Source: Asterias rubens (lineage: Eukaryota). Taken from it: 64,000 nucleotides of DNA. A program made the position numbers and the translations under genes. The notes beneath the pieces are model-generated. The model saw nothing but the letters and a program-made list of their open reading frames with translations. It was not told the DNA's origin and made no database searches. Every line of letters begins with the position of its first letter. The first letter of the stretch is position 1. Below are positions 13,072-35,660 of this stretch, in pieces. The stretch lies in contig NC_047083.1 in assembly GCF_902459465.1 (NCBI RefSeq), positions 434,001-498,000 on the forward strand. The letters run 5' to 3'.

Positions 13072-16000
13072 ATGTTTTTCTGCAGAGGTGGGAGGCAATC
13101 CCGACCCAAGTCCACCTTCATCCTGCTTGTTATACTCCTTGGCGCTGGTTACTTCTATATACGCTACTATAATTCAGACCAGCAGAACCAGCGCGATGGG
13201 AGTCTGTTTGAGGGGCGAGAAGCAGGGTTTGGTGGGGGAGGGAGAGCGCCGGAGCCCCCACTAGAAATCGGCAAGAGACCGGGTGATTTGGGTTTGGAAA
13301 GGAAGGTAGCTGCTGTCAAAGAAACTGTGAAGGAACCTGCAAAATATATATCAGGTAGGTACAACCGTATATGTAGAACCCCTCCGGGAAACGTTCCGTA
13401 TCTTGCCACCACTTGTTCACTTTATCTTGACAAAAGAAAAATATTTTTTTTTTGAGTAAATTTATTTTATTGCACTAACGAATGAAAAAGTGGTGGCAGG
13501 ATACTGAAAGGTATATTGAACATAGCTAACGCACTAAATTGGTCCTGGTGGCTATAGTCTAGAATTTGGGGAGAGCAAACCCTGGCTACACTCCTACCCA
13601 ACCACCTATCGCCCCTTCTTTCACTCTAAATCTGAATCTGAATCTGAATTATAGAGTCGGCAAAGCATCCTTTCAGGAAATATCACACCAACTTTTGTTT
13701 AGCTTGCGCGTCGCGTGGGGGGAGGGGGGGTTGACACTCTTCTTTCACCACATGGTCCAAATTGCATAAAGCCTCAATCACAGAAACTTGCTAAACTCGA
13801 CCGCACTTCGAAATGACTTAATGAAACTCAACAAATTATTAATTCGAGAAAACACAATAACATAAATTCCTTTGTTTTTCTCTACCAAAACGTCTGCAGC
13901 TTATAATACAACAAATTGTTATTTAATTTTGACCTTGTCACTATCGGCATACTTTAAACAACATTATTTTATTGATCAACATAATATATATATTTTTTCA
14001 ACCTGTATTTTAATGGGGAGATGAAAATAACAAACTTAAATTTTCACTAACAAGAACATGAACATAATGTGACCTACAGAATTAGTACGTCCCGTAGCTT
14101 TTGAACCCTGTATTCATCTAAACCTCTGTCTACGTCATTAACAAGGTTTACACGTTGGAGTAAAGTCCATTCCTCAAATGTTTATTCAAAAGATTCCAGA
14201 ACAGGCAACCGATCTTGAATAGAACACTTGTTTGAACAACATGGGTTGAGCAAAGATGTCCACTTTAGGGAGCGCCACTTTTACAAACACACTGTAGGTA
14301 TATTTGCTGTTAAGACCACACATGCCACGTATACAGTTTAGGCACTTTCAGACAGAATACACTCTGCTTTTTGTTCGAATTATACCTTAGTTATTCCATT
14401 TTATCTACTTTGGGAGCTTGAGTTTGGGGAAAAATCGTCAAAATATCAGAATAAACGTTTATGTGAAAGTTTATGACAGGAGATGTGAAACTACATGGTC
14501 TGCTTTGACGACTAGACGATTTAGTTGCTACGGTAGTATTGCGTAACAGTTTTGCCTATTGGACTCAAGGTGTCTTCAAGAAAACTACGTCAATGTATTT
14601 AGCCTCTTCTTACACCAGAAATCACCGCACAAAGGATATAGCAATTTTCCGTTTTTCATCGAGTATCATCGTCTGAAAGTGACAAGCATCAGAGGTATTA
14701 TACGACTGCAAAGAAGACTACATTCCAGTGATGTCCATAATAACTCTTTATTATCCTGTAATCAGATGAAACTGATAACTGATAGTCTCTTTTCGTGCCG
14801 CCGAGGTGCTGATCCAATCCAGATAACAGTAAATCTCCCGTGCTCAACGGAGATCTGATGACGACTTTTGTTTTTTCTCCAAATTCCCAGTGAAAGTTTT
14901 GAGAGAATTGTTTCACATTTTAAGTGAACCTTTTCAAGTGAATCTTTTTATAAAAGGGATTAATTTTCACAAACATCAGAGCGATGTTTACAATCAGGCA
15001 TTTAATCAGCCGGATGAACAGATTGAAGGGCACGTTGTTAATCATCATTGCGCTTTGTGCAGCAAGTTTCTACGTCGGACTTTACCTAAAAGCGGACTCA
15101 TCTAAGGCTACCCCTACCGACAAACGACTCGCTGAGCCCCGTCGTGCCGTGGACCCTCCTGATGCTCCGGTCGGTGCTCCGGTCGGTGCTCCGGTCGCTG
15201 TTCCGGTTCAACCAAGGCAAACAACATTAAACCAGATTATTACAGAGACAAAACCCAGATCTTTCATCTTAAATTCAGCCTCGACCAGTGCATTCAAGTC
15301 AGGTATAATTAATATCTTTATTTTCTAAACTTCCTAAGTTCCAGTCATTTGTATTTCACCCCTGTCCACACATTCCAGTAATACCAATGGAAACAAGACG
15401 AGTCTGTGAAGAAAGCAGTCAGGCTCCCATCCATTTGTGATGTAGACATCAGGGCAAAATTTCATATAACTGCTAAGCACAAACATTTGCATGACAATTC
15501 TTCCTTGATAAAAACAGGATTGCCAACCAAAGTTCCATTTGTTGCATATTGCTTGGTACTGTTATTCAGCTGTTGATTGCTTATAAAATTCACATGGAAG
15601 TTTGGTTGTTAATTCTGTTTTGACCAAGGCAAACATAATGCTCAGCAAATTTGTGTGCTAGCAGCTCCATGAAATTAGGCCCATGTTCACTTTATGCGCT
15701 GAGAGGCTTTTGCATCATTGTTTGTATCAGCCATTTTTATTTTAATATTTTTCAGAGTAACCCTTCTTTTTTACTCTTTATTTGTTTCTTTCCAAAGCTC
15801 TGAATAAAACTTGGATGACATGGACTGACATCGAGAGTCCTGGGGTCTACCGCGCATGCGTACCGAGACCCAAGGACGGCATTGAAATGACTGAAGTAGT
15901 AACGGGAGGACTGGTTGAACACTCTAACAGAATGACAATAACGCATTGTCTACACAGCTGCATTGCCCTCGTAAGTAAAATGGGACACGTTGGAACGCTA

Positions 16001-19000
16001 GGTGGCAGCAGACCTACCAGGTATAATTTCCAGCGCTTACATAATTCTGAGCATGTGCACATTGCCGAGAACAATGGATTTACCTGGTGACTCTGCTGCC
16101 ACCTAGAGTCTCAAAAGTTCCTCTTTTTTGGAAAGGATTACAAACCATCATTGTTTAATTTTAGTCTAAAGGTACGTGTATACTGATTGTATATGACAAC
16201 CATTCTGTGAAATATTTAACCCTAAAATGAAGTCATATTCAAGAAAATTGTTCTACTGTATTACTTCGAAATAAAATGGTTTCTTTTCATGATTCTCTCA
16301 ATGTTGTTTACACAATCGAAAGCTGTACTTCAATAACCAAGTAAGTTTGTTTTGCCAATCATTTTAGCAGTGATTTCCAAACGTATACCTGAAGGAAACA
16401 ACATCTAAGTATGCTTTTACGGGTCGAAATGTTTGAATAATGTATGCAACTTCTTCTTGTAGGGTTTCACCTATGCTGCCCTCAGTCGTGGTACTGAATG
16501 TTTCTGTAGTGACGTCAAAGGTGAATCACCTCTGCTGAACTATATGGAGAGCGCCCTCTGCGACATACCGTGCTCAGGTGAAGGCAGGTATCACTGCGGT
16601 GGTGCTCATCATATGTCGCTCTACAGAACGGCTGTGCCAGGTAAAGTTCTTATGTCACTGTTTTGTCCCAACTTGACAATCGTCCCAACTATAGTTGGGA
16701 CACCAAATATAGTTGGGACAGGTCCCAACTTGAGTTCAAGTTGGGACGTCCCAACTGTAGTTGGGGAAAGCCCAATAGAACTCTTAGGCCCTTATACAGG
16801 CTGCAAGGTACATGATAGCATCCACCAACTATTAAAAAAAAATTAAGAAAACAAAAAAAATAAGAACAAGAAAGAACGATTATTGTACTTGTAGATAACG
16901 CAAAACAAAACCAACATTTATTTATTCAATCGTAATGTTGTTATTAAAAAGAAAAACAGAGTTACGATTATGTTATTTACCTTTCAAAAGCGTTTTTTTT
17001 TTTTAAACCAAAGTACAAGTAGTAGTAATGCTAGTTTTTTAATTTTAGTGTTTATCCCTCAGTGTTTTTAATTATTGATGGCTGTGTACAGGTTCTGCAT
17101 TTAATTACATTTTAACTGCATTATCTCTAAGGTTTTATTTATAACTGTATAGATTTTAATGGGTTTGCTTTTAATTGTTCAGCGCCCAGGAGCATGTTTC
17201 ATGGATGGGCGCTATATAAATTGCCATTATTATTGATTCATAATTGATAAATAATTCCCATAATTCTCACCCCTTGTTTGATTTGACAGATAATCGTTGT
17301 TCTAAAGTTGAGCTAAAGCCGGTAGGTAGCTTGCCCCTGGTTGCTCTAGCTAGCTACCCCCGGTCTGGTAACACTTGGACACGGCAGCTCATCGAGCGAG
17401 GAACCGGGCTCCTGACGGGAAGTGTGCACTGGGTCAATGAGAAAGATATGACCATCTCCAAGAAAAGTAAGTCATTTTGAAATTCCTTTTTTAATATTTT
17501 ATTGTATACCATGCTGTATTGTCTTCAGCACCTTCAGTTCCTTAAAGACCCTGGACACTATTTGGCAATTGTTGAAGACCAGTCTTCTCACTTGGTGTAT
17601 CTCAACATTATGCACAAAATAACAAACCTGTAGAAATTTGAACTCAATTGGTCGTCGAAGTTGCGTGATAATAATGGGAAAAAAAAACACCCTTGTCACA
17701 TGAAGTTGTGTGCTTTCAGATGCTTGATTTCAGGACCTCAAAATCTAATTCTGAGGTCTCGAAATCATATTAAAATATTTTAGTGGAAAATTACTTATTT
17801 CTCGAAAACTACGTTACTTCAGAGAGGGAGCCGTTTCTCACAATGTTTTATAATTATCAACAGCTCTCCAATGCTTGTTGCAAGTAAGTGTTTATGCTAA
17901 CAATTATTTTGATTAATTACCAATAGTGTCCCTGCCTTCCAGTTTTTTCTCTTCTGATTGCACTTTTGTGTGCGATCTGCACTCGACCAACAAGCACTGT
18001 CCTCCGCCCTCAATCACATGTTATGGACCAATACATGACATTCCAATGTGTATCTGTTTTAATTGTACCCTTTCGTACATTACAAAGACCATAAATCAGT
18101 ATTTTTATGCGAGTGTCTTTAAAATCAGCATTGAAGAAATAAATTAAAACAATAATTTACAATAATTTCCTTCCTGCAGTATTTCCCGGTGGAAACATCG
18201 ACTACCATTCTCGGCAGACCATCTGCGTCAAGTCCCACCTCAACGAGGCTAAGCATATCCAGACGTTTGAGGGCGCTGTTCTTCTCATTAGAAACCCTTA
18301 TAGCGCTCTTGTGGCGGAGATCTTCCGGAGGCAGATGTTAGATCAAGCGAAGACAGCGGAGGAAACCATTCAGTATTTCAATTCTCCCGGTAAGACGAGG
18401 ATCCTTCTCTTTTTTCGTATCTTCTTCAAATACTAAAATGGATACGGTTAAAAAAGGTCATATCACTGCCCTCAAAATGAGGATGAATTTTACGGTTTCT
18501 GGGCATTACAAAACAGTTCTTCTCTTCATAGTCAAATGTGAGACTTTTGGGGACATTACGTTGCAGCAGACTTAAAAGGTAAAACCTTTGTTCTTGGGAA
18601 TGTGCGCATGATCAGAACTACGTAATAAGTGGAAATTGTCATAGTAGGTCTGCTGCCACAAAGCATTCTAAAGTCTCCCATTGGAAGAAGGTTTTTAAAG
18701 TTTTCATCAGGCTGAGAATCACTTGAAGATCAAGTAGCGAATGAATCAATAGTAACTTTTAGTTTTGTTGTTAATTTGGCACTGTGAAACTAAAGTTCTT
18801 TTGTGGCACAAGCCTATGTAGAAAGTGTTTTCTCACTGGAATTTCCGAGTTCATGAGTCATACTTCCTAAAAGGTATGCCATCGGGCCTGTCTGAGGAAA
18901 GAACTTGACAGATTTTACCTCTCTTTTGCTGAAAACCGAATACTGAGTAATTAAAGGCACTGGACACTAGGCCTATTGGTAATCACTCAAATTAATTGTG

Positions 19001-19817
19001 AGCAAAAAAACTTACTTGGTAACGAGCAATAGAGAGCTGTTGATAGTATAAAACATTGTGACACAACTTGTGCAACATTACTCTTTCGCAACTTCGACGA
19101 CCAATTGAGTTCAAATTTTCACAGGTTTGTTGTTATGCATAATAATGTCGAGGTACACCAAGTGAGAAGACTGGTCTTTTACAGTTACCAAAGGTGTCCA
19201 GGTCTTTAACTATTCGTGTGTTTTTGGTCACTGTCGCTGCTAGGCCATCGAAGGGTTTTTATACCAATGTTTCAAGACAGATCTTCTTTTTGTGAAAACA
19301 AGTACAGCGTGCATGGGTGTATGCTTTGAGTGTGGAAACCCTTATGGAGTGTGGGCAATAATATTGTTCTGAAACTAGTAATTAAAAACTGTTTAAAGTG
19401 TTTTTTGTTTGTGGTTTATCTTCCGTGACAGAATGGAGAAACTTTGCCGAGAACCAATCAAAGAGCTGGAAGAAAATGGCGGTTCAGTGGATCACAAATT
19501 CGAAAAAGATCTTTGTGGCTCACTACGAGAATCTTCAGGAAAACACCAACGAAGAACTCACAAAGATTGTACAGTTCCTAAACGTCCCTGTAGATAAACA
19601 ACGTGTGTTGTGCGCCGTACAGGAGCACCCGTCTTCTAAAGCCACTGGTATTGCTCTTGGCAACCATGGACGAAAGACCCGCGTGTATCTGACTAAAGAT
19701 CCATTCCCAAGCGATGTCCGGAAACTGGTCGATGATAATATTAAAGAGGTGAACGCAACTCTGATAGCACATAAGCTAACACCACTCCCGAGAGACTACT
19801 CTGTAGAAGTATACTAA
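13072..19817 (+). CDS. WSCD: WSC-domain sulfotransferase, paralogue A (WSCD1/2 family, sialate O-sulfotransferase-like); exons 13072-13354 OR 14984/15014-15302, then 15798-15970, 16463-16640, 17290-17466, 18180-18389, 19432-19817
   Basis: Signal anchor. WSC cysteine pattern (YRACV..CLHSC..GFTYAALSRGTECFCS..CDIPCSG..CGG..SLYR). 5'-PSB motif ALASYPRSGNTW, TICVKSH and 3'-PB motif LLIRNPYSALVAE, matching the recalled WSCD motifs ALASFPGAGNTW / CVKTH / LLIRNPY..AEF. All GT-AG phases are consistent. Confidence 0.92.
14984..15302 (+). CDS. Alternative first coding exon (1b) of WSCD paralogue A
   Basis: Own ATG, hydrophobic anchor LLIIIALCAASFYVGLYL, Pro-rich stem, and a phase-1 donor G|GTATAA compatible with the exon starting at 15798. 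Confidence 0.75.
15998..16106. mobile_element. Inverted-repeat core CTAGGTGGCAGCAG...CTGCTGCCACCTAG; copies at about 18560-18660 and 31290-31396
   Basis: About 26-bp inverted arms around a shared spacer (TTCTGAGCATGTGCACATT / AATGTGCGCATGATCAGAA) at three sites. Confidence 0.75.
17542..17938 (-). mobile_element. Kolobok-like MITE family K1, reverse copy
   Basis: Reverse complement of the 27903-28289 element. Confidence 0.85.
18951..19209 (+). mobile_element. K1 MITE, internally deleted copy
   Basis: TTAAAGGCACTGGACAC...GTGTCCAGGTCTTTAA termini, with the central hairpin segment missing. Confidence 0.85.
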
Positions 19818-19950
19818 TCCCGTCAACAGCCGTCAATAACAGACAGTTGATTATTCGTATAAGCTTACATCACTCCCGAGAGACTACTCTGTGTAGAAGT
19901 ATACTAATCCCGTCAAACGACCGTCAATAACAGACAGTTGATTATTCGTA
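19771..19950 (+). repeat. Head-to-tail duplication (about 87-93 bp) of the last codons, stop and proximal 3' UTR of WSCD-A
   Basis: ATAAGCT.ACA.CACTCCCGAGAGACTACTCTGT(GT)AGAAGTATACTAATCCCGTCAA...TTATTCGTA at 19771 and 19858. Confidence 0.9.
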
Positions 19951-20275
19951 CGAGAGGAGTTGTGACGATGCATAGGCAATCACGTGTTTATTTCAACAAA
20001 CGAAGAAATACAAAATATTATTATTATTAATTAAACGAACTTACTACTATTTTCACTAGATACTTAACTTCCTTTTGTTAAAGGGCATTAAATGAACTCA
20101 ACTGAAGCTAAAAGAAAGCGAGAAACAGCGAACCGCAAGAAGATAATGTTATTATATATTTTTTTAGAAGCTGCCCTGCTTATAAGCATGAAGGTATTCT
20201 GTTTATCAGGATGCTGTTTTAGTTTTAAGATTCTGTCTGTTTCACAATACCGTGAATTATATACAAACTTATTCT

Positions 20276-20787
20276 GCGGTAGATTTCACAAGACTTTACG
20301 CAACTGCATACTCTCTTAATGTAAAAGAGTGAAAAAGCACTCTTTGAAGAGCCATACTCTTTTTCGAGTGGTCTTCCACTCTTTTAGATTGAAGTTTGCA
20401 TCTTTTTGAATGTTGAACTCTGTGAAATAACCACAATTCTTTTTAAAGAGCCATATGAGGGACAACTCGAAATGTACAGAGTGGTGTTTTTCACTCTTTT
20501 ACATTTTAGAGAGTAAGTCGAGCATTTATTGCTCATAGTTGTGCACCAATGACACAATAACTCTTGCACAAGTGGAATATACCTTAATCGCGGTGTGGCC
20601 ATCTTGGTTTTACTCCATTCCAACTCATTGCAGCCAAAGTGAGGCTGGACGAAATAATAGTCTGGTGCCGTGTTTGCGAAATTTACGTAAGCATTTACTG
20701 CACTTGGAAACAGGGAACATGACCACTGGTGACAGTGTGATGAAGGTCTATTGGCGCAGTTGTGTAAAGTTTCATGAAATCGGCTGC
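20276..20787. mobile_element. MITE with about 32-bp imperfect TIRs
   Basis: GCGGTAGATTTCACAAGACTTTACGCAACTGC versus GCAGTTGTGTAAAGTTTCATGAAATCGGCTGC, plus the inner inverted pair TGTAAAAGAGTGAAAAA / TTTTTCACTCTTTTACA. Confidence 0.65.
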
Positions 20788-21269
20788 CGAATAGCGCCCT
20801 CTTTGAACCATTCTCCTTCAACCCATGATCATTTTAAATAATGGGTTGGCAGATGCGGATATTTCGAGGGACAAATTTCCCATCGACACTGGCACAGATT
20901 TATAAACTGCATATAAAGCAACTTCAAAGAGGGTGCCTTTTAGGCTTGTGACGTCATAAGAAAACTGAATGTTTTAATTTTGTATTTTTTTTCACACTAT
21001 AATGATCATAGAGCTGATCAACTTGTCTTTCAATCTGTTCTTTTCAGAGTTAGTTCCTTCGATATTCATTTATGTGTTTACATTTTTATTTAAATTTTTT
21101 AGTACGAGTTATAAACTAAACAGGTGTCTAACTGAACACTGAGAAATAAATCAGCTGAAACAATAATGAGTTTATTTCCACAGTTCAACTTTATTTTGCA
21201 CTGTTTGCATGATAGGGTTGTCATGTCCCGAGTCGTTCCCCGACGTAGTTTGCGATAATAACCAATTCT

Positions 21270-21548
21270 TATAATATAGCGCATTTCACAATAACCGTAT
21301 CAATGCGCTTTACATGAGTGCCCTGGTCATAGGACCAATAACATCCCTTTTTAATGTTTCTCAGCTCCCTTGGGAGTATACAACCTGGGCAACAGTTTAT
21401 ATCGCTCCAAAGGCTTTTTCATACACAATATCATCCTCTACCCTCGCAGGTACCCATTTATACCCCTGGGTGAAGAGAAGCAATTATGGTAAAGTATCTT
21501 GCTCAAGGACACAAGTGTCACGACCGGGATTCGAACCCACACTCCGGT
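21270..21548 (-). mobile_element. tRNA-derived SINE with CORE-like segment
   Basis: Minus-strand GGTTCGAATCC (21527-21537) followed by GTGTCCTTGAGCAAGATACTTTAC, and a GCGCTATATTA-type 3' tail. Confidence 0.75.
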
Positions 21549-22834
21549 GAATTATCGATGAAGATTAAGATGGTAAACGAAACAAGTTTATACTTATAAG
21601 AATGTACAGATTTATTTACAATATTACACGAGTTAAAAGTTTCACCAAAATAAAAAAATACGATATCTTAGGAATAACTTTGTGTGAGTGTCACTCCTTG
21701 TCTATACATCTCTACACCAGTCCAACTCCTCGTCTTAAGAGTTAGCACTCATTCAATTTCAAATAGGCAAACAACATTTTAAAATAATTGATCGTCCTCT
21801 CCCTCATACATTTTCGAGGCCGCATCCTTTTTATTTCCCTTTTTTTAATTCCATTTTTGTTCTGCAAAGGGCAAATATTCTGTGTAATTCTCATTCAGAA
21901 CTGACTAATCTCTTAAGAACTTGTACACTATGGCCTTCATAAAGTAAGTGGATACTTTTAAACTGAAGAATTGGTGGCCAGTTTCAATTTAAATGCTTGG
22001 CGGTAACCTTTGAAGAAAAAAAAGAAAGAAAAAAAAACAGCAATAAAAAGGCCCTCATCCTCCTCGTTTTGGAAAAACCCGGACGATCAACTTTTTTTTT
22101 ACCATACTTTTTTCATTTCATTTTCATTAATTATTTTCTTGATCTGTCCTTGACTGTCTTTGACTTATTGTACTTAATTTGTTTATTATTCTCTTGTTTT
22201 GACCGATTTGGACATAAATGTTGATTGAATTGAATAGAGTTGATCATGATGGCGCAGCGCCACGTTTTCACCCTCTACTGGTTGCCTGTCTGCTCCCGTG
22301 CATTGTTGTAGATGCCACGCTTCGGTACCCATCTACAGTCAACAACCTATCGACTCAGACACCTGTGAAAGCTACCCGATTGCTGTTTTTGTAAAGCTAT
22401 GTCCTAGACAAGACTAACAGTCATCATCGTATACTGTGAAGTGCAACAAATGTGAGCAGGCCGTGGGAACACACATTTTTGTCGCGATCCATGTGAACAT
22501 TTTTGTATAAACTGCCATCTCAATGCCGATCGATCTGTTTTAAGATCGCAGTGTTCTATAGGTAAAGATAAGCGAGTGATAAACACACAGGTAAAGCCTA
22601 TCTAAACCTACATCTACGCTGGAACTCAGCAAAGTCTACTTCTGGATGTAAACGCTTAGGTGAAGACTATATGGGCGTGAATCAGGTGGAAAGTTGTGCC
22701 AAATACAAGTAAAACAACACTGGTTGGAGCCGCATGACTCTGAGGTTACTACCGAAAGTAACTGACTGGTAATTAACAAACAGGTGTGAGCAGATTATGC
22801 AGCCGATTCTTTAGCTTGCTATCACAGGTACACC

Positions 22835-25800
22835 ATGACTCGTCGAACGTATCAAACAACATGTCGGTTTCTAAACTTGCCAGTCAGACTATTGGCACTA
22901 GTTTTACTGATAGTAGGAGGTTATCGTATCGCGAAAAGTTGTAATCGAATTGAGAAGGGTACCAACGTATCTAAACAAGAAGTACAGCAAGACGGCGACG
23001 GACAAGGTCAGGTGCCAGAAATTCCTCAGCATCCAGCATCTCTTCCTGACACCAAGGAGAAGTTTATTTCCGGTAAGTCCCACTCCCTTTTACTCACCCC
23101 TCCTCCCAACCCAAATGACTCCTCCCTTAACACCCTTCCCAACCCCAATACCCCCTTCCCTACTCACACGCACACTATTGTGTATACACCTGCAACCGTG
23201 GATGTCCCTGTTTTTTTTTGCAACAGCTCCCATAATACTGGCTTTGCCTACGTTTTCCAATTAATTATTAAAAAAATGTACCTTTTTTCATGTTGACAGT
23301 AAAAATTTTAAGCATACAGTAGAAAACAAATATTGATGAGTATAATAATGAAGGATGGATGCCAGACAATTTAACAGTAATACAATGTATAGAAGTTTGA
23401 AGAAAATAACTACAGAAATTAACGAGCTAGTCAACATACAGGACAAAGTTTACGCATCATGCTTTTGTATATTTCCCTGAGACAAACAAGGACTTTGACG
23501 ACAAGAAAGAAAACAAAAACACAGAACAAAGAAACAAAAACACAAACAACTGAGGATCTTTCCCGAACCGTGGAATCATTATCCCTTTTTTATTTTGTAT
23601 TATTGGTTTATTCTTTAAAATAAACTCCCATGGCGACCAAAGGTGGATTTACAGGAAAACATACAGAGATTAAAAACTAGGAGAAAAACAAAATTAGAAA
23701 ACATTAGAAAAAAATTACACTAAAAAAACGTGATCAGTATAAAGTTACTTTAGGTTAATATTTTGATACCTTTTCATTTTTAAACTTGTGTTGTTTTTGG
23801 TTTGGGTTTGTTGGTTTCGATTTTAATGTTTTGTGGCTGTAGAGAAAGAGGTTTGAGGATCGGAAGGGGGTGGAGTGAGGGCCTCCTGCGCCATGCACAC
23901 ACTAATTCTTCCTTTCAAGCGCTGCTTCAATAATTGAAGATTACCGCATTGCGGCTCGGCGCACGCGTGAAACCATGATTAATTGTTTTAATCTGTTGTT
24001 AATTTATCAAAAAAAAAAATACAAATACAAATCACTCATACAATTAATAGAATGGTAATTTATTATTACTTATTTTAAATGCGAATACACACATCTATAC
24101 CTCGTCTTTTATTATAACAATATTCCTGTTTTGTAGCAGCTCTTAATAAAACGTGGATGACATGGACTACTATTGATAGCCCAGGGGTGTACCGCGCATG
24201 CGTTCCAAGACCTAAAGATGTGTTAACAGCGCATGATATTGTGACGGCTGGATTGGCGAAAGAGTCGACGGACATGACTATTGGACTGTGCCTAAAAACA
24301 TGCATCTCGCTTGTAAGTTGTTAACAAATATTCAAAAGTTTTCCTATGATTTATTATGTTAATGATTAAAAGAACTGGGACCCAATCAGCTATTTTGCAC
24401 ATAACATATAAGGCCAGATAAAAAAAAATATTAGTTGATCGTCCCCTCCCTCATCCTTTTTTGAGGCCGCATCCTTTTTAAAAACTTTTGTTCCCTTTGT
24501 TTTCTTCAAAAAGACACATTTTCTGTGTATTTCTCATTGAACTTACTTGTACTTGTTAACTACTGCTGCATGAAGTAAGTGGTGACTTTCAAACTGAAAA
24601 ATTGGTATCCAATTTGAATTAAAGGGCTTAGCGGAAACCTTTGAAATAAATAAAAAATAACAAATTAATTTGCCCTCGTCCTAATATACACCCTTTTAGG
24701 AAAAACCTGGATGATCAACTTGTATTGTTTTTTACTTGGCCTTATATAGCAGTATAGTAGTTTGGCTAATAACTGTAGTTTGGCTGGTACCTTGGTAGTT
24801 TTGGCTGGTACCTTGGTAGTTTGGCTGGTACCTTGGTAGTTTGGCGGTTAACTTGGTAGTTTGGCTGGTAACTTGGTAGTTTGACTGGTATTAAACTTGG
24901 TACTTTGGCTGATAACCTTTTCCTTTCATATTTATATGTTTTTACGAAACCGAGGCCGTAAAGAATTTACAGTATGGCCCCTCATTATGTTTCGTGTAGT
25001 AGAGTAGTAAAAACAAACAGGAAACCAAACATTGCCATGATAAATCCTCAAAAATGAGTAACTATACCGATTTTTTTGTCTATAATGCAGCATCTCACCT
25101 ATGCCGCCCTCAGTCGGGGAAGTCAGTGTTTCTGTAGTGACGTCAAAGCCGAATCAGTTTTGTTAGACTACATGGAGAGCGCCCTCTGCGATAAACCATG
25201 CTCAGGTGACCCGAAGTACCACTGTGGAGGGTTTGAGTTTATGTCTTTATACCGGACATCAGTTCCAGGTGGGTGTGGTTTCTCTTCCCCCAACTTCAGT
25301 TGAAGTCTTATTTTTATTTGGTCTCTATCAACAGCACTGCTCTCCATTGCTCCTTATGCCAACAATTATATCAAGAATTTACCACTAGTGTCCAGTGCCT
25401 TTAAAAAGTTTTGATCTGTTGACTATTTTGTAGATCTTCGATGTTCAAAAGTGGAGCTGAAAGCTAAGAACAGTCTACCGTTTATCGCTTTGGCGAGCTA
25501 CCCTCGATCCGGGAACACGTGGACCCGTTCGCTCATCGAGAAAGGAACAGGAATACCGACTGGAAGTGTCTACTGGAAAGGCGAGAGTAAAATGCAAATC
25601 TCAAAGAAAGGTACATTGTTTGAATGAATGACGTCAAAGCATACGTAATATTGATGTGAATCTAATCATTTATTGTTTTATACTAGTTACAGTTAGCAAT
25701 CATATATATTTGTGTTTACTCTTACAGTCTTCATTGGTGGGAACGTTGACTACAAAACGAAGCAGACAATTTGCATCAAATCTCACCTGAGTGACACTAG

Positions 25801-27346
25801 CCATGTAAAAGAGTTTGAGGGCGCTGTTCTACTCCTGAGGAATCCATACAGCGCAATCGTTGCCGAGATTTTTAGACGTCTTATGATAGAGAAGAAGATC
25901 GCTCACGATGAAGCGATAAAGCAATTCCAGTCTGCAGGTAACGCACCCCCAAAGGAATTTTTCTCAAACCTCTTTAGTATACAAAACTACACAATCAAAA
26001 TTATTTTGTAAAACAAACTACTTTTAGAACTATTTTTATGTAAAGAAAAAACAACAGCACATGAAAAAAACAGGAAATTTTATGAATGGCATTATTTAGT
26101 TAGCTCATAGCAATATAAAAGGCTCCCATTTGGTATTGAAATTATCCAAGTTGTTACTTTGAACTCTTAAGATTTTTTTTAACATTACCCCCCCCCCCCA
26201 AAAAAAAAAACCCGAGGGTTTTTATGTCATTCATCCTCAGGCAAAATAATATGAAAATAGCAAAGAGCAGACCATTTCAGACCATACACTTTGGTCGTGT
26301 TGGCAAAATTAAAAACAATGTTCCGAGAATTAGTAACCTTCAGGTAAATCTTATCTAAGATAGCAAAGCTATAGTTTGAGTCGATTTTAATTCTGTAGAT
26401 CATTAATATAAAAACATTGGACACGATTGGTAACTATTGTTAAAGACCAGGCTTCTCATAAAAAAAAACCTGTGGAAATTTGAACTCGGTCGTCGAAGTA
26501 ACGAAATAATAATGGAAGAAAATAACACCCTTGTCACACGAAGTTGTGTGCTTTCGGGACCTCAAAATCAAAATCTGAGGTCTCGGAATCAAATCCGTTG
26601 AAAATTACTTTTTTCCCGAAAACTACGTTTCTTTAGAGCCGGTAGCCGTTTCTCACAATATGTTATACTATCAACAGCTCTCCCTTGCTTGTTACCAAGT
26701 AAGTGTTAATGCTAACAATTATTTTGAGTAACTACCAATCGTGTACAGTACATGCCTTTAAAGAGTTGAACCAAGGGTGCGTACCACTTGCGCAAACGTT
26801 TAGCAACCACAGGCGAACGTACAACTTAGGTGTTGGTGGTGGTTTTAAAATGGCGAATAAAGCCATGCACAAGTTTCAAATCCTAACTAGTCAAGTTATA
26901 GACAACACAGTATAGTCCCCAGTCTCTGATACTCGTTTTTGTATGGTCTTGTTACACTAGAATGGACGAAATTTGCCAAGGAGCAGACTGCACAATGGAA
27001 GACAATGGCATTACAGTGGATCACACACTCTAAGCGCATCCATGTAGCACATTACGAAGACCTACAGCAGCACACCAGCGAAGAACTCACAAAGATTGTG
27101 CAGTTCCTGAACGTCCCTGTGGATAAACAACGCGTGCTGTGCGCCGTACAAGAGCACCCATCTTCTAAAACCACTGGTATTGCTCTTGGTAACCATGGAT
27201 TGAAGACCCGTGTGTACCTGACTAAAGATCCATTCCCAAACGAAGTCAGGAAACTGATAGATGATAATATTAAAGAGGTGAATTCAACTCTTGTTAAATA
27301 TAACTTGACACCTTTCCCGATGGATTATTCGGTTAAGATTTTCTAA
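22835..27346 (+). CDS. WSCD: WSC-domain sulfotransferase, paralogue B; exons 22835-23072, 24140(or 24137)-24312, 25091-25268, 25434-25610, 25728-25937, 26961-27346
   Basis: Exon lengths 173/178/177/210/386 are identical to paralogue A. Motifs ALASYPRSGNTW, TICIKSH and LLLRNPYSAIVAE are intact. Confidence 0.92.
24411..24742. mobile_element. TA-flanked MITE (AGGCC...GGCCT); degenerate relative at about 21780-22100
   Basis: TA|AGGCCAGATAAAAA..GTTGATCGTCC ... GGATGATCAAC..TTTTTACTTGGCCT|TA. Absent from the homologous intron of paralogue C. Confidence 0.8.
24770..24910. repeat. 19-bp minisatellite GTAGTTTGGCTGGTACCTTG-type; diverged homologue at 32340-32460
   Basis: About 7 units, at the same intron position in paralogues B and C. 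Confidence 0.85.
26410..26761 (-). mobile_element. K1 MITE, reverse copy in WSCD-B intron 5
   Basis: K1 internal sequence ending GCCTTTAA. Paralogue C has the empty site (CATTAATCTAAAGAGCTGAACC, about 34684-34705). Confidence 0.85.
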
Positions 27347-27684
27347 AAGGCACTTTGTCAGCACACGCTGGCTTCATTTTAAACTGTTCATTGTCTTAGT
27401 TACATCGTCCACACTGATGGTCTGCTCATATGCAATGATATACCAAGCTGGACCATACCACACGTCCTGGAGGGGTGTCAATCAAACAGGGCATGTGGCT
27501 GGGATACATGGGAATGGAACCAAAAAACATGGTTTGTCGATTGTCAATGGTTCAGATGAAACTAAATTATAAAACTTCCTTAATTCGGAAAAGAAGCACA
27601 ACAAGAGAAAATAGAATTAGCTGTTGCAAACAACTTACTAACCAAAAGGACCGATGGTATAAATGCAAACAATAGTTAATGGCA

Positions 27685-27720
27685 TGACGTTTCGACCCTA
27701 GCAGAGTCTTTCTCGAAGGC
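27685..27720 (-). ncRNA. Penelope-type minimal hammerhead-like motif, second copy
   Basis: Minus strand GCCTTCGAGAAAGACTCTGCTAGGGTCGAAACGTCA. Stem II GACTCT/AGGGTC pairs fully if a G-U pair is allowed. Confidence 0.5.
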
Positions 27721-27902
27721 GATTTTCAAAGTGCATGTACATATTGGATATTGTGTTAGTAACTATTGGCCCTATCGCAAGTCGGGAGGTAGGCTGAGTA
27801 CATTGCCACGCCCTTAAAGAGCTTAGAGATTTAGAGAAAGATATAAATTAAATGGTATGCTAAACCACTGTTACGATCTTAGACAAATGGCTTGGCATGT
27901 AT

Positions 27903-28289
27903 TTAAAGGCAGTGGACACTATTGGTAATTACTAAAAATAATTATTAGCATAAAACCTTTCTTGGTGACGAGTAATGGGGAGAGGTTGATGGTATAAAAC
28001 ATTATGAGAAACGGCTCCCTCTGAAGTGAAATAGTTTTCGAGAAAGAAGTAATTTTCCATGAATTTGATTTCGAGACCTCAGATATAGAACTTGAGGTCT
28101 CGAAATCAATCATCTAAACGCACACAACTTCGTTTGACAAGGTTGTTTTTTTCTTTCATTATTATCTCGCAAGTTCTATGACCGATTGAGCTCAAATTTT
28201 CACAGGTTTTTTATTTTATGCATATGTTGAGATACACCAACTGTGAAGGCTAGTCTTTGACAATTACCAATATTGTCCACTGCCTTTAA
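27903..28289 (+). mobile_element. Complete K1 MITE (Kolobok-like, TTAA TSD)
   Basis: TTAA|AGGCAGTGGACACTATTGGTAATT ... AATTACCAATATTGTCCACTGCCT|TTAA (1 mismatch). Central perfect 15-bp stem GATTTCGAGACCTCA/TGAGGTCTCGAAATC. Confidence 0.92.
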
Positions 28290-28619
28290 ATAAGTCACAT
28301 AGAAGATGTACAAATTGTTGGAATAACAATGCCCAGAAATATTTTAGCAAATAGATGTTGTGTTGGGAAAAATTGGCTCTTAATTTGAAAGCAAAAAAAT
28401 CTGCAAAATAAAGCTTCTTTTTTGTGTCCTTTTATTTTGTTTTCTTCTTCTTCTTCATGATAACATGTTTTTATACAAAAGTAATCAAAGCATTCCCCGA
28501 GCTGTAAACCTACAACTTCAAGAATCAATTTCTTTTTTGTTATAGAACTCTAATATGAGAAACTTGAATGATCGTAGAAGTCCCTAGAAAATGTATAGCA
28601 GAATGTAAACCAAACACTA

Positions 28620-28661
<42 letters not shown>

Positions 28662-28996
28662 ACAAACATGTAATAAATAACTATGCAATTTTATTTTGTG
28701 TTATATCGATGGAAGATGACGTCCAGTTTGCACACATTCCATCACTTTCAGGAACTAGAAGATTACAGGACTCGGGAAAGTACTGAGTATACAGTGCTAA
28801 CACACATCGGTGTATGGGTAAAAACCAAAATTAATATTCTTTATCCCCGATGCAAATTTAACATCTATTAAACTAGAAGATTGTCTTTCACTACAGTTTA
28901 AATAAATTATATCTCACTGTTTTCTGAAACATTTGATTTTTGTTTTAATTAATGTAAGATAAATATTTTGGAATTGATTTTTACAACGTATGGTTA

Positions 28997-29011
28997 CCAC
29001 TAGAGGGCGCT
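28997..29011 (+). promoter_or_regulatory. CTCF-type motif between WSCD-B and WSCD-C
   Basis: CCACTAGAGGGCGCT matches the CTCF core consensus CCACYAGRKGGCRSY. Binding is not shown. Confidence 0.5.
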
Positions 29012-30439
29012 TAGTTTACATACTAAGAAAATAATAAATTCCGCGTATCCTGCATGTCCATACACAGCTATTAGTCTGGGCTGTTATGTATGGATTTCAA
29101 AACGGCCGCAATTGTTTACTTAGTTTATTGAGTAACATGAGTTGTGAATGTCACATGAAGTTCACTTTGGTGGCGATACCCCCCAATTACAATGCTAATG
29201 AGTTCAAAAGCACCAATTAAAACTTTTTTTAAGTAATGGATAGCAGCCATCGTGGATTTCAAAATGGCCGCTTTTTAAAACTTGGTCTCCTGAGTAACAT
29301 GAGTTGTGAATGTCACATGAAGTTCATTTAGTTGGTGGATACCCACTTTGTAACACCAATTAACTTAAACCTGAAGCTTTCTCTAGTTTTGCAAATGGAA
29401 TAACCTTCTTAGGATACATAATGTGCCAGCAGACTTGACTAGACTTTACTTTAGCAGACTGTTCGAACCCACAACATTGTGATTGCAAGTCCTGCAATTT
29501 AACCACTTGGCAACAGTGACAGGGGTATTCCCCGATACGGCATAGGGCCTACTTCGAACAAAAACATATAATAAACCTTTATTTATGGCTGACTGCAAGG
29601 GCCTTTTACGTTACCATGCCAACGGAGGGAAATAAAACGATTTATTATCCCTCGGATTGAAACACAGCCGTATAGATGAAATAACCCAGCAGGAGAGCAA
29701 GTCACACGCGTTGGGCTAAACAGAGTGTTGCCGAAGCGACAGGTTAAACTCTTCAGTACTCTGGTTTGATACGTTGTTGATGTAGCTACATCAGAAGGAC
29801 GAGTTGTCTCCCCTAGCTGAGTTTGTGTCAATACAGCAGGACGAGTTGTGTCACATCTCACCCAAAGATGCCAGCAACATGCCCTACACTATTTTAGAAT
29901 GAACCAAGATCATAATATTGTGGTATTTGTTTCCGCTGTTTTGTGAGTGAAGACCTTTCTTTTGAAACGCCACAGCCAGAGTTTTTGCCAACCCATGGTT
30001 GGAAAACTATGGAAAACCATAAATGCAAATCAAAATAAGATCGTTACCGTTTGTAAATATGTTACCAAATTATTCAAAAATTGTGTTGATTTTGTTGGAA
30101 AAAAACCCAACTAATTACGAGAGGTATTTTATTTAATGAAAATTTGCAGAAAATGTTGAATTTGGTTAAAACATCTGTTTATACGATTGAGTGTTTTACT
30201 GACCAAGGCGGTTTGTTTGCCAAAGAAAGGTGTATAGCAACCTCTCGATGAACGACCTTAGTAGTACGTGTACCATGGTGGTGTACACCGCTCCATCAAT
30301 GTATGGATGTTTAACGTCTCTTACGTAACTACTACACAAAAACTGTATTGTTGAAGATGTCACGCTTCGGTACCCACTAAGCAGTCTAGAAGACTGGTAA
30401 AATTACAAATATTCTTTGGCTTACTATCACACGTACACC

Positions 30440-33400
30440 ATGGCATTGTGTTGTACGTATAAAACATCATGGAAGTTTCTACAATTGCCATTTAGACTAT
30501 TAGTGTCATTGGTGTTAGTTGTGCTGATAGTAGGAGGTTATTATATCGCGCAAATTAGTTGGAATAGAGCTGAGAAGGGTACGCAAGATGAAGATGGCGA
30601 CGGACGACATGGTCAGGTACCAGAGTCTCCTCGGCGTCCAGCTATTCTTCCTTACACTAAGGAGAAGTTTGTTCCTGGTAAGTCCCGATGCAACCATGGA
30701 TACCTATTCATTGGTTTTATACTCACTTTTTATTTTGCAACTTTGTACAACTTTTCCAATTATTATTTCTTACATCAAAAAAATCTCAAAACGCTGTACA
30801 TATTTTTTACATATTATTGTAATCATTAAGCTAAAACAGATAAGCAAAATACAGCAAGATTACATTGGACAATAAGAATGACAACAATACAAACAATGAG
30901 ATAAACCAATAAGAGACAATCAACAATATATCACACCACTAGAAAAAGCAATAAATAAAATGTTAAAAGGATACAAAGATTCAAAGATAATGTCTTATAA
31001 AAAGAAATGTTTTGAGATGAGTTTTAAAAATACCAAAGTTGGATGATTGTCCTCAAATGAGTCCTGAATACCCTGAATATTGTCCCTTTTATTTAATTTA
31101 TTCATTTTGTTTGAATTCTTCGAGCAATGCAAATAAAACAAGCACATGCCGTCTTGGGAGGGGCAACAGTAAAAAAAAGAGAAAAGAAAAAAAATGTAAT
31201 TAAAAAGATTTGCTCTCCCAGATCTAGCTCATAAAAAGGTTAAAATAGATTTACTATATTAAGACACTCTAATAGGAGACTTTCCAACGCTAGGCGGCAG
31301 CAGACATACCGGGTAAATTCCCATTGTTTACATAGTTCTGAACATGCGCATAATTCTGAGAACAATGGATTTACCCGGTAAGTCTGCTGCCCTCTATCGT
31401 CCCAGAAAGTCTCCCATTGAAACGGAAGATGGCAAGTAAATGCAATACACACACGATATATAGAAGAACCACCATTTTTCATTATTGGTGTATTCTTTGA
31501 AAACATGGCGACCAGAGGTCATAATTACACTTAAATATACACTGATTCAAAATTAGCAGAACAAAAAAACTACACTAGGAACGTGATCAGTATAATTACT
31601 CTAGGCCACATACCTTTAAATAATATAATGAGCATATTATGATTTGTACTTAATTACTTGTATTAATCTGTTATTAATTAATTTATATCAAAATACATGT
31701 ATAAACATTATTACAAACCACTCATACAATTAAAATGACACTTTATTACTATATTTGTAAATGCGAATACACACATCTGTAGATACCTCGTCTTTCATTG
31801 TCAAATCTCCATTCTGTGGCAGCACTTAATAAAACATGGATGACATGGACTACCTTCGACAGCCCAGGCATGTACCGCGCATGCGTTCCAAGACCTAAAG
31901 ATGTCCTTACAGTGCATGATATTGTGACGGCTGGATTGGCGAAAGAGTCGACGAACATGACTATTGGACTGTGCCTAAAAACATGCATCTCGCTTGTAAG
32001 TTGTAAACAAATATAATTCAACAGTTTTTTCTTTATGATTTATTTTAAAATGATAAAAGGCACTGGTCTAGACTTGCGGACAAGTCGTTTATGGTCCCAC
32101 GCGGTGAGATAGTCGAGTTGCAGCGGTGCTCTAGCTCCCCGCGCGAACTGCTGTTGCGCGACTACTGCGCGCTGCTCGACTTCACTCCATGGGGAGTAGA
32201 AGTCGGCAACCAGCAGTTCGCGCGAGAGCAGTGACAACTCGACTATCTCACCACGTGGGGCCATTAACGACTTGTCCACAAGTCTACACTGGGACACATT
32301 CAGCTATTTTGTCACTGGTAATTTGGCTCATAAAGAACTGGGTAGTTTGGCTGGTAAAGAAATTGGTAGTTTTTTGTAGTTTGGCTGTTAACTTGCTATA
32401 GTCTGGCTGTTCACTTGCTAGTTAGTTTGGCTGTTAACTTGGTACTTCGGCTGGTAACTTTTTCCTTCCATATTTTCTTACGAAAAGAAAAAAACAGTAT
32501 GGCCCCTCATTATGTTTCGTGTTGTATACAGTAGTAAAAGCATACAGGGAACTAAACGGTTGCCACGATTTAATCCTCAAAATGATTATCTATTGTTTTA
32601 TCAATAATGCAGCGTCTCACATATGCCGCCCTCAGTCGGGGAAGTCAGTGTTTCTGTAGTGACGTCAAAGCCGAACCAGTTTTGTTGAACTACATGGAGA
32701 GCGCCCTCTGCGATAAACCATGCTCAGGTGACCCGAAGTACAACTGTGGAGGGATGGAGTTTATGTCTTTATACCGGACATCAGTTCCAGGTGGGTGTGG
32801 TTTCTTGTTTTTTTCCCTTCCCCAAACTTCAGTTGAAGTCATATTATTATTTAAATTACCTCTTTCTGAAGTTATTATATTTGGTTTGCGGTAACACCAT
32901 GTGTGTATCTACTTGCCAGGTTCTTATTTAGACAGTGACCGTCTTTATGTATTCTACTACCGCGGAGTCGGATTGTTCGGGAGACATCTCAGTTCTGAGA
33001 AGAACTGTCCTGCTTCTTAATAAACTACTACCTGTACACAAGTTGAAATATAGAAAATCGGCTGGGACTACTACATTGTATAGCTTTATGGGATCATAAT
33101 TAACTGCACTACCTCGAACTCTTGAATTGGTCTCTATCAACCAGCTCTCCATTGCTCGTTATGCCAACCATTATTTTAATAAATTAACAATAGTGTCCAG
33201 TGGCTTTAAAATAGTTTTGATTTGTTGATATTTTGTAGATCTTCGATGTTCAAATGTGGAGCTGAAAGCTAAGAACAGTCTACCGTTGATCGCTTTGGCG
33301 AGCTACCCTCGATCTGGGAACACATGGACCCGTTCGCTCATAGAGAAAGGAACAGGAATACCGACTGGAAGTGTCTACTGGGAGTACGAGAGTAAACTCC

Positions 33401-35487
33401 GAATCGCCAAGAAACGTACATTCTTTTGTTCTCTCTTGTATTTTTTAAGATTCAAGATTCAAGATTTTTCTGATGATGGCGTCACGTGAAATGGGTCAAT
33501 ACGTTCATTTGCCAGTCCTGTACGTCACGCATGAAATTCCGTTAATACATCATCGGTTTTGCATCAAGATGGCAGCCGAATAAAGTCAAATCATACGTTA
33601 TTGAATCTAATCGTTTATAATACGTGACCAATCGTATATATTTGTGGTTACTCTTACAGTCTTCATTGGTGGGAACATTGACTACAAAACGAAGCAGACA
33701 ATTTGCATCAAATCTCACCTGAGTGACACTAGCCATGTTGAAGAGTTTGAGGGCGCTGTTCTACTCCTGAGGAATCCATACAGCGCAATCGTTGCCAGAC
33801 GTCTCATGAAAGGAAAAATGGCTCACGATGAAGCGATAAAACAGTTCCAGACTCCAGGTAACGCCCGAGAATTTTACTCAAACTTCTTAAGGAAACAAAA
33901 CGTCACATTAAAAAGTATTTGTAAAACCAACTATACTATAAAGCCATGGTACACTTTCGGTAAACAGTATTATCCAAGGCCCACACTTCGTGTATATATA
34001 ACATAACAAACCTGTGAAAATTTAGGCTCAATCCGTCATCGGAGTCGGGAGAAAATAACGAGAGAACCCACCCTTGTTTCCGCACGTTTCGCCGTGTCAT
34101 GACATGTGTTTACTATAATCCGTAATTCTCGATATCGAGAATTGATATTGTTTTATTGTTTTCTCAACAAGTAAAGCATTTCATGGAATAATATTTCAAG
34201 AAAAGTTTTTCACCACTACCTTCTGTAAACCCTGTAAGTTATTTGTAAATCTGCGAACTTTTATTTTTGTTCTGTTCCGAAAGTGTCCAATGGCTTATAA
34301 GCACTATACAATGTATTATGTAAAGAACAAAAGAACAAACAGCAAAATGGCAACAGGAAATTGTGTGAATCGCATTGGATTTGTCCATAGCAACAAAATG
34401 GCTCCCATTTCGTATTGAATTTATGTAAGTTTTTACAAAAATAAAAGTTTCTTTTTTAATAAGAATAAACGAGGACTTCCTGTCATTTAACTTCATGCGA
34501 TATTGAACACGGCAAAGAATGAGAGGTAAATTAAGAGCAGACCATTTTCTATTAAGGACTCCAAGTAGCTTGGTTGTGTTGTCAAAATTAAAAACAATGT
34601 TCAGAGAATGAATTACCTATGTACAGGTAAATCTTATCTAAGATAGCTAACCTATAGTTTGAGTCGATTTTTATTCTTTACTTCATTAATCTAAAGAGCT
34701 GAACCAAGGGTGCGTACCACTTGCGCACACGTTGCCAATGATTGCGCATGTCGCCAACAATTTCGAAATGAACTGGTTGTGCGCCACCACCGTTGGCTAA
34801 AGTTAACAACCACAGGCGAACGTACTTCTGGGTTGTTGGTAGGTGATTTTAAAATGGCGAATAAAGCCATGCAAAAGTTTCAAATTCCTACTTAGGCCGT
34901 GTCCGAATTGGTGGCTACGGCTGCGGCTACGACCAGGGGTGTTGCTAAGGGCGTCCTATACTTCAATGCATGATGACGCGGCGATCCAGCCGTAGCCGTA
35001 GCCGCCAATTCGGATCCGGCCTTACATGTAATCAAGTTATAGACAACACAGTATGATCCCTAGTCTCTGTCACTCATTTTTGTATGGTCTTGTTACACTA
35101 GAATGGACGAAATTTGCCAAGGAGCAGACTGCACAATGGAAGACCATGGCATTACAGTGGATCACACACTCTAAGCGCATCCATGTGGCACATTACGAAG
35201 ACCTACAGCAGCACACCAGCGAAGAACTCACAAAGATTGTGCAGTTCCTGAACGTCCCTGTGGATAAACAACGGGTGTTGTGCGCCGTACAAGAGAACCC
35301 GCCTCATAAAGCCACTGGTATTGTTATTGGTGACCATGGACGAAAGACCCGCGAGTATCTGACTGACGATCCATTCCCAAACGATGTCCGCAAACTGATA
35401 GATGATAATATTAAAGAGGTGAATTCAACTCTTGTTAAATATAACTTGGCACCTTTCCCGATGGATTATTCGGTTAAGATTTTCTAA
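30440..35487 (+). CDS. WSCD: WSC-domain sulfotransferase, paralogue C; exons 30440-30677, 31823-31995, 32613-32790, 33239-33415, 33660-33857, 35102-35487
   Basis: Same exon phases. Lengths 173/178/177/198/386, so exon 5 is 12 nt shorter, in frame. 5'-PSB and KSH motifs are intact. Confidence 0.9.
32069..32286. mobile_element. GC-rich foldback MITE, hAT-like
   Basis: TAGACTTG...CAAGTCTA termini with about 55-bp inverted arms plus inner arms. Flanking 8-mers CACTGGTC / CACTGGGA (6/8 match). Paralogue B has a single AACTGGGA at the homologous site. Confidence 0.75.
33937..34299. mobile_element. MITE with AAGCCAT..ACACTTTCGG / CCGAAAGTGT..ATGGCTT termini in WSCD-C intron 5
   Basis: Terminal inverted repeat seen directly. 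Absent from paralogue B intron 5. Confidence 0.75.
34895..35021. mobile_element. PIF/Harbinger (Tourist)-like MITE with TTA TSD
   Basis: TTA|GGCCGTGTCCGAATTGGTGGCTACGGCT...AGCCGTAGCCGCCAATTCGGATCCGGCC|TTA. Absent in paralogue B. Confidence 0.8.
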
Positions 35488-35660
35488 AAGGCACTTTGTC
35501 AGCACACGCTGGCTTCATTTTAAACTGTTCATTGTCTTAGTTACATCGTCCACACTGATGGTCTGCTCATATGCAATGATATCCCAAGCTGGACCATACC
35601 ACGCGTCCTGGAGGGGTGTCAATCAAACAGGGAATGTGGCTGGGATACATGTGAATAAAC

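Follow-up and report, generated by a model that had tools for sequence, protein, structure and literature searches.

The window analyzed in this study is a 64-kb stretch of the genome of the sea star Asterias rubens (G000:C23:434001-498000; assembly size of 417.6 Mb). Three genes of the WSCD family, named A, B and C hereafter, are arranged in it head to tail on the + strand, from the ATG of gene A exon E1a at position 13072 to the final base of the gene C stop codon at position 35487, as delineated by open frames, GT-AG sites and consistency of phase. Each gene is composed of six exons, every intron is of the GT-AG type, no internal stop was observed, and the intron phases are 1,0,1,1,1 in A, B and C alike. 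Exons 2 to 6 have equal lengths across the three genes, with the sole exception of gene C exon 5, which is 12 nt shorter. Gene A (13072-19817) comprises E1a 13072-13354, E2 15798-15970, E3 16463-16640, E4 17290-17466, E5 18180-18389 and E6 19432-19817, including the stop codon; gene B (22835-27346) comprises E1 22835-23072, E2 24140-24312, E3 25091-25268, E4 25434-25610, E5 25728-25937 and E6 26961-27346; and gene C (30440-35487) comprises E1 30440-30677, E2 31823-31995, E3 32613-32790, E4 33239-33415, E5 33660-33857 and E6 35102-35487. The preliminary description of this DNA, made from the letters alone, had recognized three intact same-strand WSCD genes with matching exon phases, and the public record bears this out: the spliced models of A (468 aa), B (453 aa) and C (449 aa) have 100% identity, end to end, with the A. 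rubens RefSeq entries XP_033646137.1 ('WSC domain-containing protein 1-like'; P0157), XP_033645596.1 and XP_033645598.1 (both 'WSC domain-containing protein 2-like'; P0180 and P0185), respectively. Because of this identity, we consider the gene models to be right and the cluster to be already part of the public annotation. The genomic observation itself is ordinary, that is, an annotated young lineage-specific tandem expansion of a known enzyme family; what is new here is the placement of the subfamily, the two-WSC gene found elsewhere in the genome, an asymmetric divergence that includes an altered helix in gene C, and the expression of gene B.

Comparison of the window DNA with itself revealed three copies, of which B and C are 75-94% identical across a unit of ~5.2 kb, while gene A matches the B/C DNA in exons only, at ~83%. 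No further copy or fragment of the cluster genes was found elsewhere in the window. The last exon, together with 73 nt of the preceding intron and ~170 nt of the 3′ untranslated region (UTR), is 94% identical between B (26888-27515) and C (35029-35656), most of the rest of the duplicated unit being 75-90% identical; this high 3′-end identity may reflect stronger constraint or gene conversion, each of which could account for it. A 20-24-bp minisatellite resembling GTAGTTTGGCTGGTAACTTG occupies the same spot in intron 2 of B (24757-24916) and of C (32317-32441), with differing copy numbers.

Domain architecture and cofactor-binding motifs

Exon-by-exon Pfam scans returned no more than weak, sub-threshold matches, since the introns split the domains, and the full proteins were scanned instead. 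Each of the three proteins then contained a single WSC stretch (PF01822; E ~1e-12 to 1e-13), as the preliminary description had claimed, and, C-terminal to it, a Sulfotransfer_1 match (PF00685; E ~1e-8), all above the gathering score; the same scan detected two WSC stretches in turtle WSCD1. The WSC region of A, B and C has eight cysteines in each case. A hydrophobic stretch is encoded by exon 1 of the three genes, including both first exons of gene A, which gives the proteins a type II layout. An AlphaFold2 model of B, based on an alignment of 40 family members, reached a mean predicted local distance difference test score (pLDDT) of 83, with a core above 90; it contains one helix at the N-terminus (residues 15-37), then a disordered stem, and folds of the WSC and sulfotransferase types. 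According to Foldseek, the nearest structures are StaL, Teg12, TPST and the cytosolic SULTs for the catalytic domain of this model (E ~1e-6 to 1e-7) and the yeast Wsc1 sensor domain for its WSC part (TM 0.78). These model-based matches indicate a general sulfotransferase fold and are uninformative on the acceptor. Our search found no solved structure of a WSCD protein.

The motifs expected to bind 3′-phosphoadenosine 5′-phosphosulfate (PAPS) were located on the + strand of each gene. The 5′-phosphosulfate-binding (5′-PSB) motif PRSGNTW lies at 17358-17378 in A, 25502-25522 in B and 33307-33327 in C. At least 35 of the 40 family members share its P, G, T and W, the four residues that were changed to Ala in the inactivated mouse Wscd1/2 controls (PMC9304399). 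A K-S-H segment (A 18230-18238; B 25778-25786; C 33710-33718), whose Lys and His are each present in 38 of the 40 members, would correspond to the catalytic pair by analogy with the general sulfotransferase fold. The core of the 3′-phosphate-binding (3′-PB) motif, RNPYSA, is found at 18290-18307 in A, 25838-25855 in B and 33770-33787 in C, R-N-P-Y being conserved in the family. The full motif, R-N-P-Y-x-A-(I/L)-(V/I)-(A/S)-E-x-(F/N)-R, is complete in A and B. Alignment of the exon 5 DNA revealed a 9-nt deletion specific to gene C (site 33788-33805, after base 33796 on the + strand), the counterpart of which in B is GAGATTTTT (Glu-Ile-Phe; 25865-25873), directly after RNPYSAIVA. Some 20 nt beyond this deletion, a further net loss of one codon brings the total shortening to 12 nt. 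The Glu that was removed is present in 35 of the 40 family members, and the Glu-Ile-Phe deletion is common to the A. amurensis C protein. The claim that all three genes have intact PAPS-binding motifs thus holds in full for A and B and in part for C, which keeps PRSGNTW, K-S-H and RNPY and lacks the Glu-Ile-Phe that follows RNPYSAIVA.

Phylogenetic placement and divergence

Sequence searches returned two kinds of proteins, namely single-WSC proteins (~440-480 aa), found in sea urchins, sea stars, sea cucumbers and one crinoid, and two-WSC proteins (~600 aa), found in these echinoderm classes as well as in hemichordates, amphioxus and vertebrates. A search of a representative library with the last exon gave no close full-length match directly, and the named proteins were reached via P0002 of Lytechinus variegatus. 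A maximum-likelihood tree of 36 proteins, a check that the preliminary description had proposed, placed the cluster in a clade made of the single-WSC echinoderm proteins (support of 100/99), and the two-WSC proteins, including vertebrate WSCD1/WSCD2 and those of echinoderms, hemichordates and amphioxus, in a separate clade (84/87). On the evidence of this tree, the single-WSC architecture is not a local novelty but an old echinoderm-wide trait, carried by a clade that is probably paralogous to vertebrate WSCD1/2. Two WSC domains, by which orthologues of WSCD1/2 are recognized, are present in turtle WSCD1, Patiria P0014, Antedon P0016 and amphioxus P0018, and only one is present in A, B and C, its alignment partner in the two-WSC proteins being the second domain. 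The single-WSC clade also has insertions of its own, four residues after the 5′-PSB helix and about ten (G-x-x-L-G-N-H-G-R-K-T) in a low-confidence loop near the C-terminus.

Within the single-WSC clade, the asteroid proteins form a clade (99/97) in which the B/C group (100/100) is sister to a group of Asterias A, Patiria, Acanthaster and a divergent second Acanthaster gene (95/89, 96/95). This topology indicates that the three genes are products of tandem duplication within the sea-star lineage, in agreement with the lineage-specific expansion proposed at the outset. Forcing the six Asterias genes together costs 19.4 lnL in the approximately unbiased (AU) test, a borderline result (p = 0.051) for groups that were named after the tree had been seen. 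Since the AU tests are borderline and the groups were chosen after the tree, we call the age of the duplication that separated A from B/C, like the exclusion of the cluster from the vertebrate line, probable: the split between A and B/C is probably old within asteroids. The split between B and C predates the two Asterias species according to the tree, and A. amurensis has orthologues, named 'sialate:O-sulfotransferase 2-like', that are 98% (A), 96% (B) and 94% (C; P0162) identical to the proteins of the cluster.

Five loci with a WSCD terminal exon were detected in the A. rubens assembly, that is, the three cluster genes and one locus each on C5 and C46. The gene on C5 (C5:670979-728690) has exons for both WSC domains (WSC1 and WSC2) and is 83-99% identical to the two-WSC proteins of Patiria and A. 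amurensis; its WSC1 exons are absent within 30 kb and were found further upstream, and its exon boundaries are those of the cluster genes in WSC2 and the catalytic region. The fifth locus (G000:C46:109081-124756; L005, L007, L009, L015) lies on a 145-kb unplaced scaffold and has catalytic exons with 60-80% identity to the two-WSC protein of Patiria. No WSC1 exon was detected within 30 kb of this locus, which may represent a further, shortened gene of the two-WSC line. Separately, at least 12 places on contig G000:C22 (e.g. 919495-942369, 6091830-6106292 and 12133823-12142643) gave single-exon WSC matches with 32-41% identity to the WSC1 region of a two-WSC protein, which suggests that the A. 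rubens genome has a large family of WSC-domain genes distinct from WSCD.

Ratios of nonsynonymous to synonymous divergence (dN/dS), estimated by the Nei-Gojobori method, are 0.16 for A-B and 0.19 for A-C, dS being saturated in both comparisons (~1.5-1.8), and 0.44 for B-C (dS of 0.18, dN of 0.08). Broken down by part, the B-C ratio is 0.30 for the WSC domain, 0.39 for the catalytic domain and 0.66 for exon 1, and in the body of the protein nonsynonymous change is below synonymous change (Fisher p = 4e-5). All three pairs are under purifying selection. Between A. rubens and A. amurensis, the 374-residue body has undergone 6 changes in A, 12 in B and 20 in C, and among 28 fixed differences specific to one or the other of paralogues B and C, 13 are derived in C and 4 in B, the remainder being ambiguous. 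Judging from these counts, the divergence is asymmetric: B and C, the younger duplicates, evolve faster than A, and C is the fastest. Differences between B and C concentrate at residues 245-256 (the clade insertion after the 5′-PSB helix), 302-311 (the helix after 3′-PB) and 391-420 (the clade C-terminal loop). The view that the paralogues are diverging is therefore supported, and can be narrowed to three segments beside the PAPS motifs. By analogy with the general fold of other sulfotransferases, these segments would flank the active site, where a change of acceptor specificity would be expected.

First exons, transcripts and intergenic DNA

A predicted alternative first exon of gene A, E1b (14984-15302, +), supplies an ATG, a signal anchor and a stem of its own, and its phase-1 donor (CAG|gtataa) fits exon 2. 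Joined to E2, its open frame predicts an isoform of 480 aa. The N-terminus of A. amurensis isoform X1 (P0186, 476 aa) matches E1b at 87% identity, and the X2 isoforms of Patiria and Acanthaster match it at 41-43%. E1a, the first exon used by RefSeq, has 97% identity to isoform X2 of A. amurensis and can hardly be aligned outside Asterias. Gene A is the conserved copy, with two alternative signal-anchor first exons, E1b being supported by its conservation. At the other end of the gene, a 91-bp unit is repeated twice in tandem (19771-19950; 92% matches), and the first copy holds the last 47 nt of gene A and its stop codon, so that the coding end is duplicated into the 3′ UTR. In gene B, the acceptor of exon 2 is of the NAGNAG type (cag|cag; 24137 / 24140), which accounts for RefSeq isoforms X1 (454 aa, with one extra Ala) and X2 (453 aa).

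Four RNA runs were mapped on 26961-32960; X1 and X3 are labeled A. rubens, and X2 bears the label of another, closely related organism. The resulting contigs are indicative of presence, not of absence. Long contigs from X1 (1440 nt) and X3 (2063 nt) each match 26961-27632 with 0-2 differences. Their earlier parts map to gene C exons 2 and 3 with 8-13 differences, being B-type sequence cross-mapped to C, and the offset from the first base of exon 2 to that of exon 6 is 738 nt, exactly the sum of modeled exons 2 to 5. These contigs are spliced gene B mRNA that fits the model exactly and extends the 3′ UTR to at least 27632: contig X1 record 1 and contig X3 record 12 are gap-free from 26961 to 27632, which sets the 3′ UTR at 27347-27632 at least (+ strand), the end of a contig being no proof of a poly(A) site. 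Expression of B and C had been put forward as a check; spliced B mRNA is present in X1 and X3, and spliced C was not found in those two runs. In X2, a C-type exon 3 sequence with 1 difference in 169 nt ends at the donor at 32790, at a depth similar to that of the B-type sequence of the same run, and an exon 2 contig mixes B-type and C-type positions and may be chimeric. The words of the last exon and 3′ UTR of C are present in the RNA runs at a share of 0.33-0.41, which is no evidence for the expression of C because 0.40 of these words also occur in gene B. A marine metatranscriptome gave coverage at 30165-30502.

Summed contig depth is very large in four stretches (27761-28360, 28761-28960, 31161-31560 and 32761-32960), where each of the four runs also has many irregular joints. 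This pattern resembles that of transcribed, highly repeated mobile elements; the stretches lie between B and C and within the first and third introns of gene C. Downstream of the cluster, positions 38000 to 46000 are unlike the rest of the window in having a sustained GC skew of +0.09-0.14 and a negative AT skew, down to -0.18.

Predicted activity and comparison with known systems

Our interpretation of the locus, to which we assign a probability of roughly 0.85, is that of a tandem array of three single-WSC, echinoderm-specific, type II Golgi-type predicted PAPS-dependent glycan sulfotransferases. To judge by the tree, their subfamily would be the sister branch of the deuterostome two-WSC line that holds vertebrate WSCD1 and WSCD2 (sialate:O-sulfotransferases 1 and 2). 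The predicted layout consists of a short cytoplasmic tail, a signal anchor, a disordered stem, one eight-cysteine WSC domain of the carbohydrate-binding type and a PAPS-dependent sulfotransferase domain. The enzymes would transfer sulfate from PAPS to a hydroxyl of a glycan carried by a glycolipid or a glycoprotein in the Golgi lumen, and the WSC domain would help hold the glycan. A glycan O-sulfotransferase activity is well supported by the modeled fold and the motifs. Sialic acid would be the leading candidate acceptor by family resemblance, and by this analogy we consider it plausible for the cluster genes, at odds that fall slightly short of even. Mouse Wscd1 and Wscd2 are Golgi enzymes that 8-O-sulfate glycan-attached sialic acid, Wscd1 on ganglioside GM1 and Wscd2 on transferrin (PMC9304399; Ertunc et al. 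2022), a split that serves as a precedent for a division of acceptors among paralogues. Homologues 'from echinoderms to vertebrates' were noted in the same work, Strongylocentrotus purpuratus being the only echinoderm included (PMC9304399).

Several observations weigh against this interpretation. The cluster genes are probable paralogues, not orthologues, of the assayed vertebrate WSCD1/2, as far as the tree can tell; forcing the single-WSC clade together with the vertebrate enzymes costs 17.8 lnL, an AU result that is again borderline (p = 0.047) and obtained with groups named post-tree. The nearer A. rubens counterpart of the vertebrate enzymes is the two-WSC gene on C5, that is, on another chromosome. 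We found no experimental literature on the single-WSC clade or on echinoderm WSCD enzymes, and no published assay of any single-WSC member. The O-8 position of starfish sialic acid is reported to be largely methylated rather than sulfated (PMC6994554), and, in the available part of a review, starfish gangliosides carry 8-O-methyl groups, the 8-O-sulfo example being from a sea cucumber (PMC8228791). WSCD-family genes were also returned by our sequence searches from insects and crustaceans; since insects and other low-sialic-acid animals carry such genes, the acceptor of the family is not necessarily sialic acid. As for gene C, its 3′-PB helix is incompletely intact in sequence, the conserved Glu-Ile-Phe being lost, and A. 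rubens runs X1 and X3 yielded no spliced C contig, only low-depth unspliced pieces (31072-31283 and 31719-31869).

The paralogy with WSCD1/2, the retention of a two-WSC orthologue in A. rubens, the occurrence of the family in insects and crustaceans and the methylation of starfish sialic acid, to which can be added the insertions of the single-WSC clade adjoining the active-site motifs, are what would be expected if the cluster encoded active sulfotransferases with a non-sialic acceptor, such as galactose, GalNAc or fucose of glycolipids, mucin-type glycans, sulfated fucans/galactans or glycosaminoglycans, sialate sulfation being left to the two-WSC gene on C5. We regard this alternative as less likely than not; it goes against the fact that, to our knowledge, vertebrate WSCD1/2 are the only members of the WSCD family to have been assayed, and these are sialate sulfotransferases. 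Sulfated sialic acids are well documented in sea urchins, which are rich in 8-O-sulfated and have some 9-O-sulfated forms; they have a role in sea-urchin fertilization and sperm motility, and are essential in vertebrate development. Sea urchins also possess the single-WSC clade, and a 2026 paper postulates an egg-specific 9-O-sulfotransferase in sea urchin (PMC13634767), which argues against a purely non-sialic role. In a more tentative reading, which we regard as rather doubtful, the single-WSC clade would be a second, functionally distinct kind of glycan sulfotransferase, for example the postulated urchin-egg sialate 9-O-sulfotransferase, or an enzyme acting on Neu5Gc, oligosialyl or non-sialic acceptors; the Asterias copies would have partitioned acceptors, and C would have neofunctionalized with a remodeled cofactor-side helix.

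Gene C could alternatively be losing catalysis, either as a relaxed decaying duplicate or as a non-catalytic, glycan-binding pseudoenzyme. Such a fate would fit the fastest protein evolution of the three genes (20 changes against 6 in A, and 13 fixed derived differences against 4 in B), the loss of Glu-Ile-Phe inside the 3′-PB helix, the lack of a spliced C contig in two A. rubens runs and a share of last-exon words no higher than the overlap with B. We nevertheless consider it improbable, as both Asterias species retain an open frame, all splice sites, the full set of eight WSC cysteines and the PRSGNTW, K-S-H and RNPY motifs, the deletion is itself conserved, the B-C dN/dS is well under 1, and C-type exon 2/3 words occur in run X2 at a B-like depth. 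The high DNA identity of B and C over the ~5.2-kb unit, up to 94% in the last exon and 3′ UTR, might also evoke two haplotypes or an assembly duplication of one gene, an artefact that the preliminary description had already judged unlikely. The chance of this is negligible: the haplotig is excluded because A. amurensis has a separate orthologue of each gene, those of B and C being closer to their A. rubens counterparts than B is to C (86%). The tree and the B-C dS are likewise contrary to it, and intron lengths differ between B and C (117 vs 244 nt and 165 vs 448 nt). We therefore retain the array of three predicted glycan sulfotransferases as the interpretation of this locus. Two separate WSCD lines coexist in echinoderms; that of the cluster is uncharacterized and echinoderm-only, and for it the automatic name 'sialate:O-sulfotransferase 2-like' is not to be taken as functional evidence. 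The single-WSC clade constitutes a defined candidate set for unexplained echinoderm sulfations, such as that of 9-O-sulfated Neu5Gc in urchin eggs.

The catalytic domain is predicted to have the general PAPS-binding fold of StaL/Teg12, TPST1/2 and the cytosolic SULTs, its best structural matches in the modeled B protein, whereas these enzymes are only 14-18% identical to it, lack a WSC domain and are either soluble or active on peptides. Vertebrate WSCD1/WSCD2 share with the cluster the type II layout, the order of WSC and sulfotransferase domains and the motifs P-x-x-G-x-T-W, R-N-P-Y and K-x-H, but have two WSC domains instead of one, show ~30% identity and fall in a separate clade, the clade of the cluster having its own insertions. 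The two-WSC proteins of Patiria (P0014), A. amurensis (P0204), Diadema (P0024), Antedon (P0016), Ptychodera (P0026) and A. rubens (C5) are of the same family and have the same WSC2/catalytic exon boundaries, the A. rubens gene sharing its intron positions with the cluster in the catalytic part; they differ by their two WSC domains and their length of ~600 aa, and group with amphioxus and vertebrate WSCD1/2. The other known members of the subfamily are echinoderm single-WSC proteins present in RefSeq (e.g. L. variegatus P0002, S. purpuratus XP_788295.3, Patiria miniata P0159/P0160, Acanthaster planci P0156/P0158, Antedon P0163, Holothuria and Apostichopus), which have the clade, the length of ~440-480 aa and the domain order in common with the cluster. 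Their direct orthologue in the sea-star cluster is gene A, which over the body of the protein is 81% identical to that of Patiria and has the alternative N-terminal isoforms in common with them. Among the proteins returned by word-based searches, B and C have counterparts in Asterias only, and the other echinoderms have a single gene, plus one divergent extra copy in Acanthaster, rather than an array of three.

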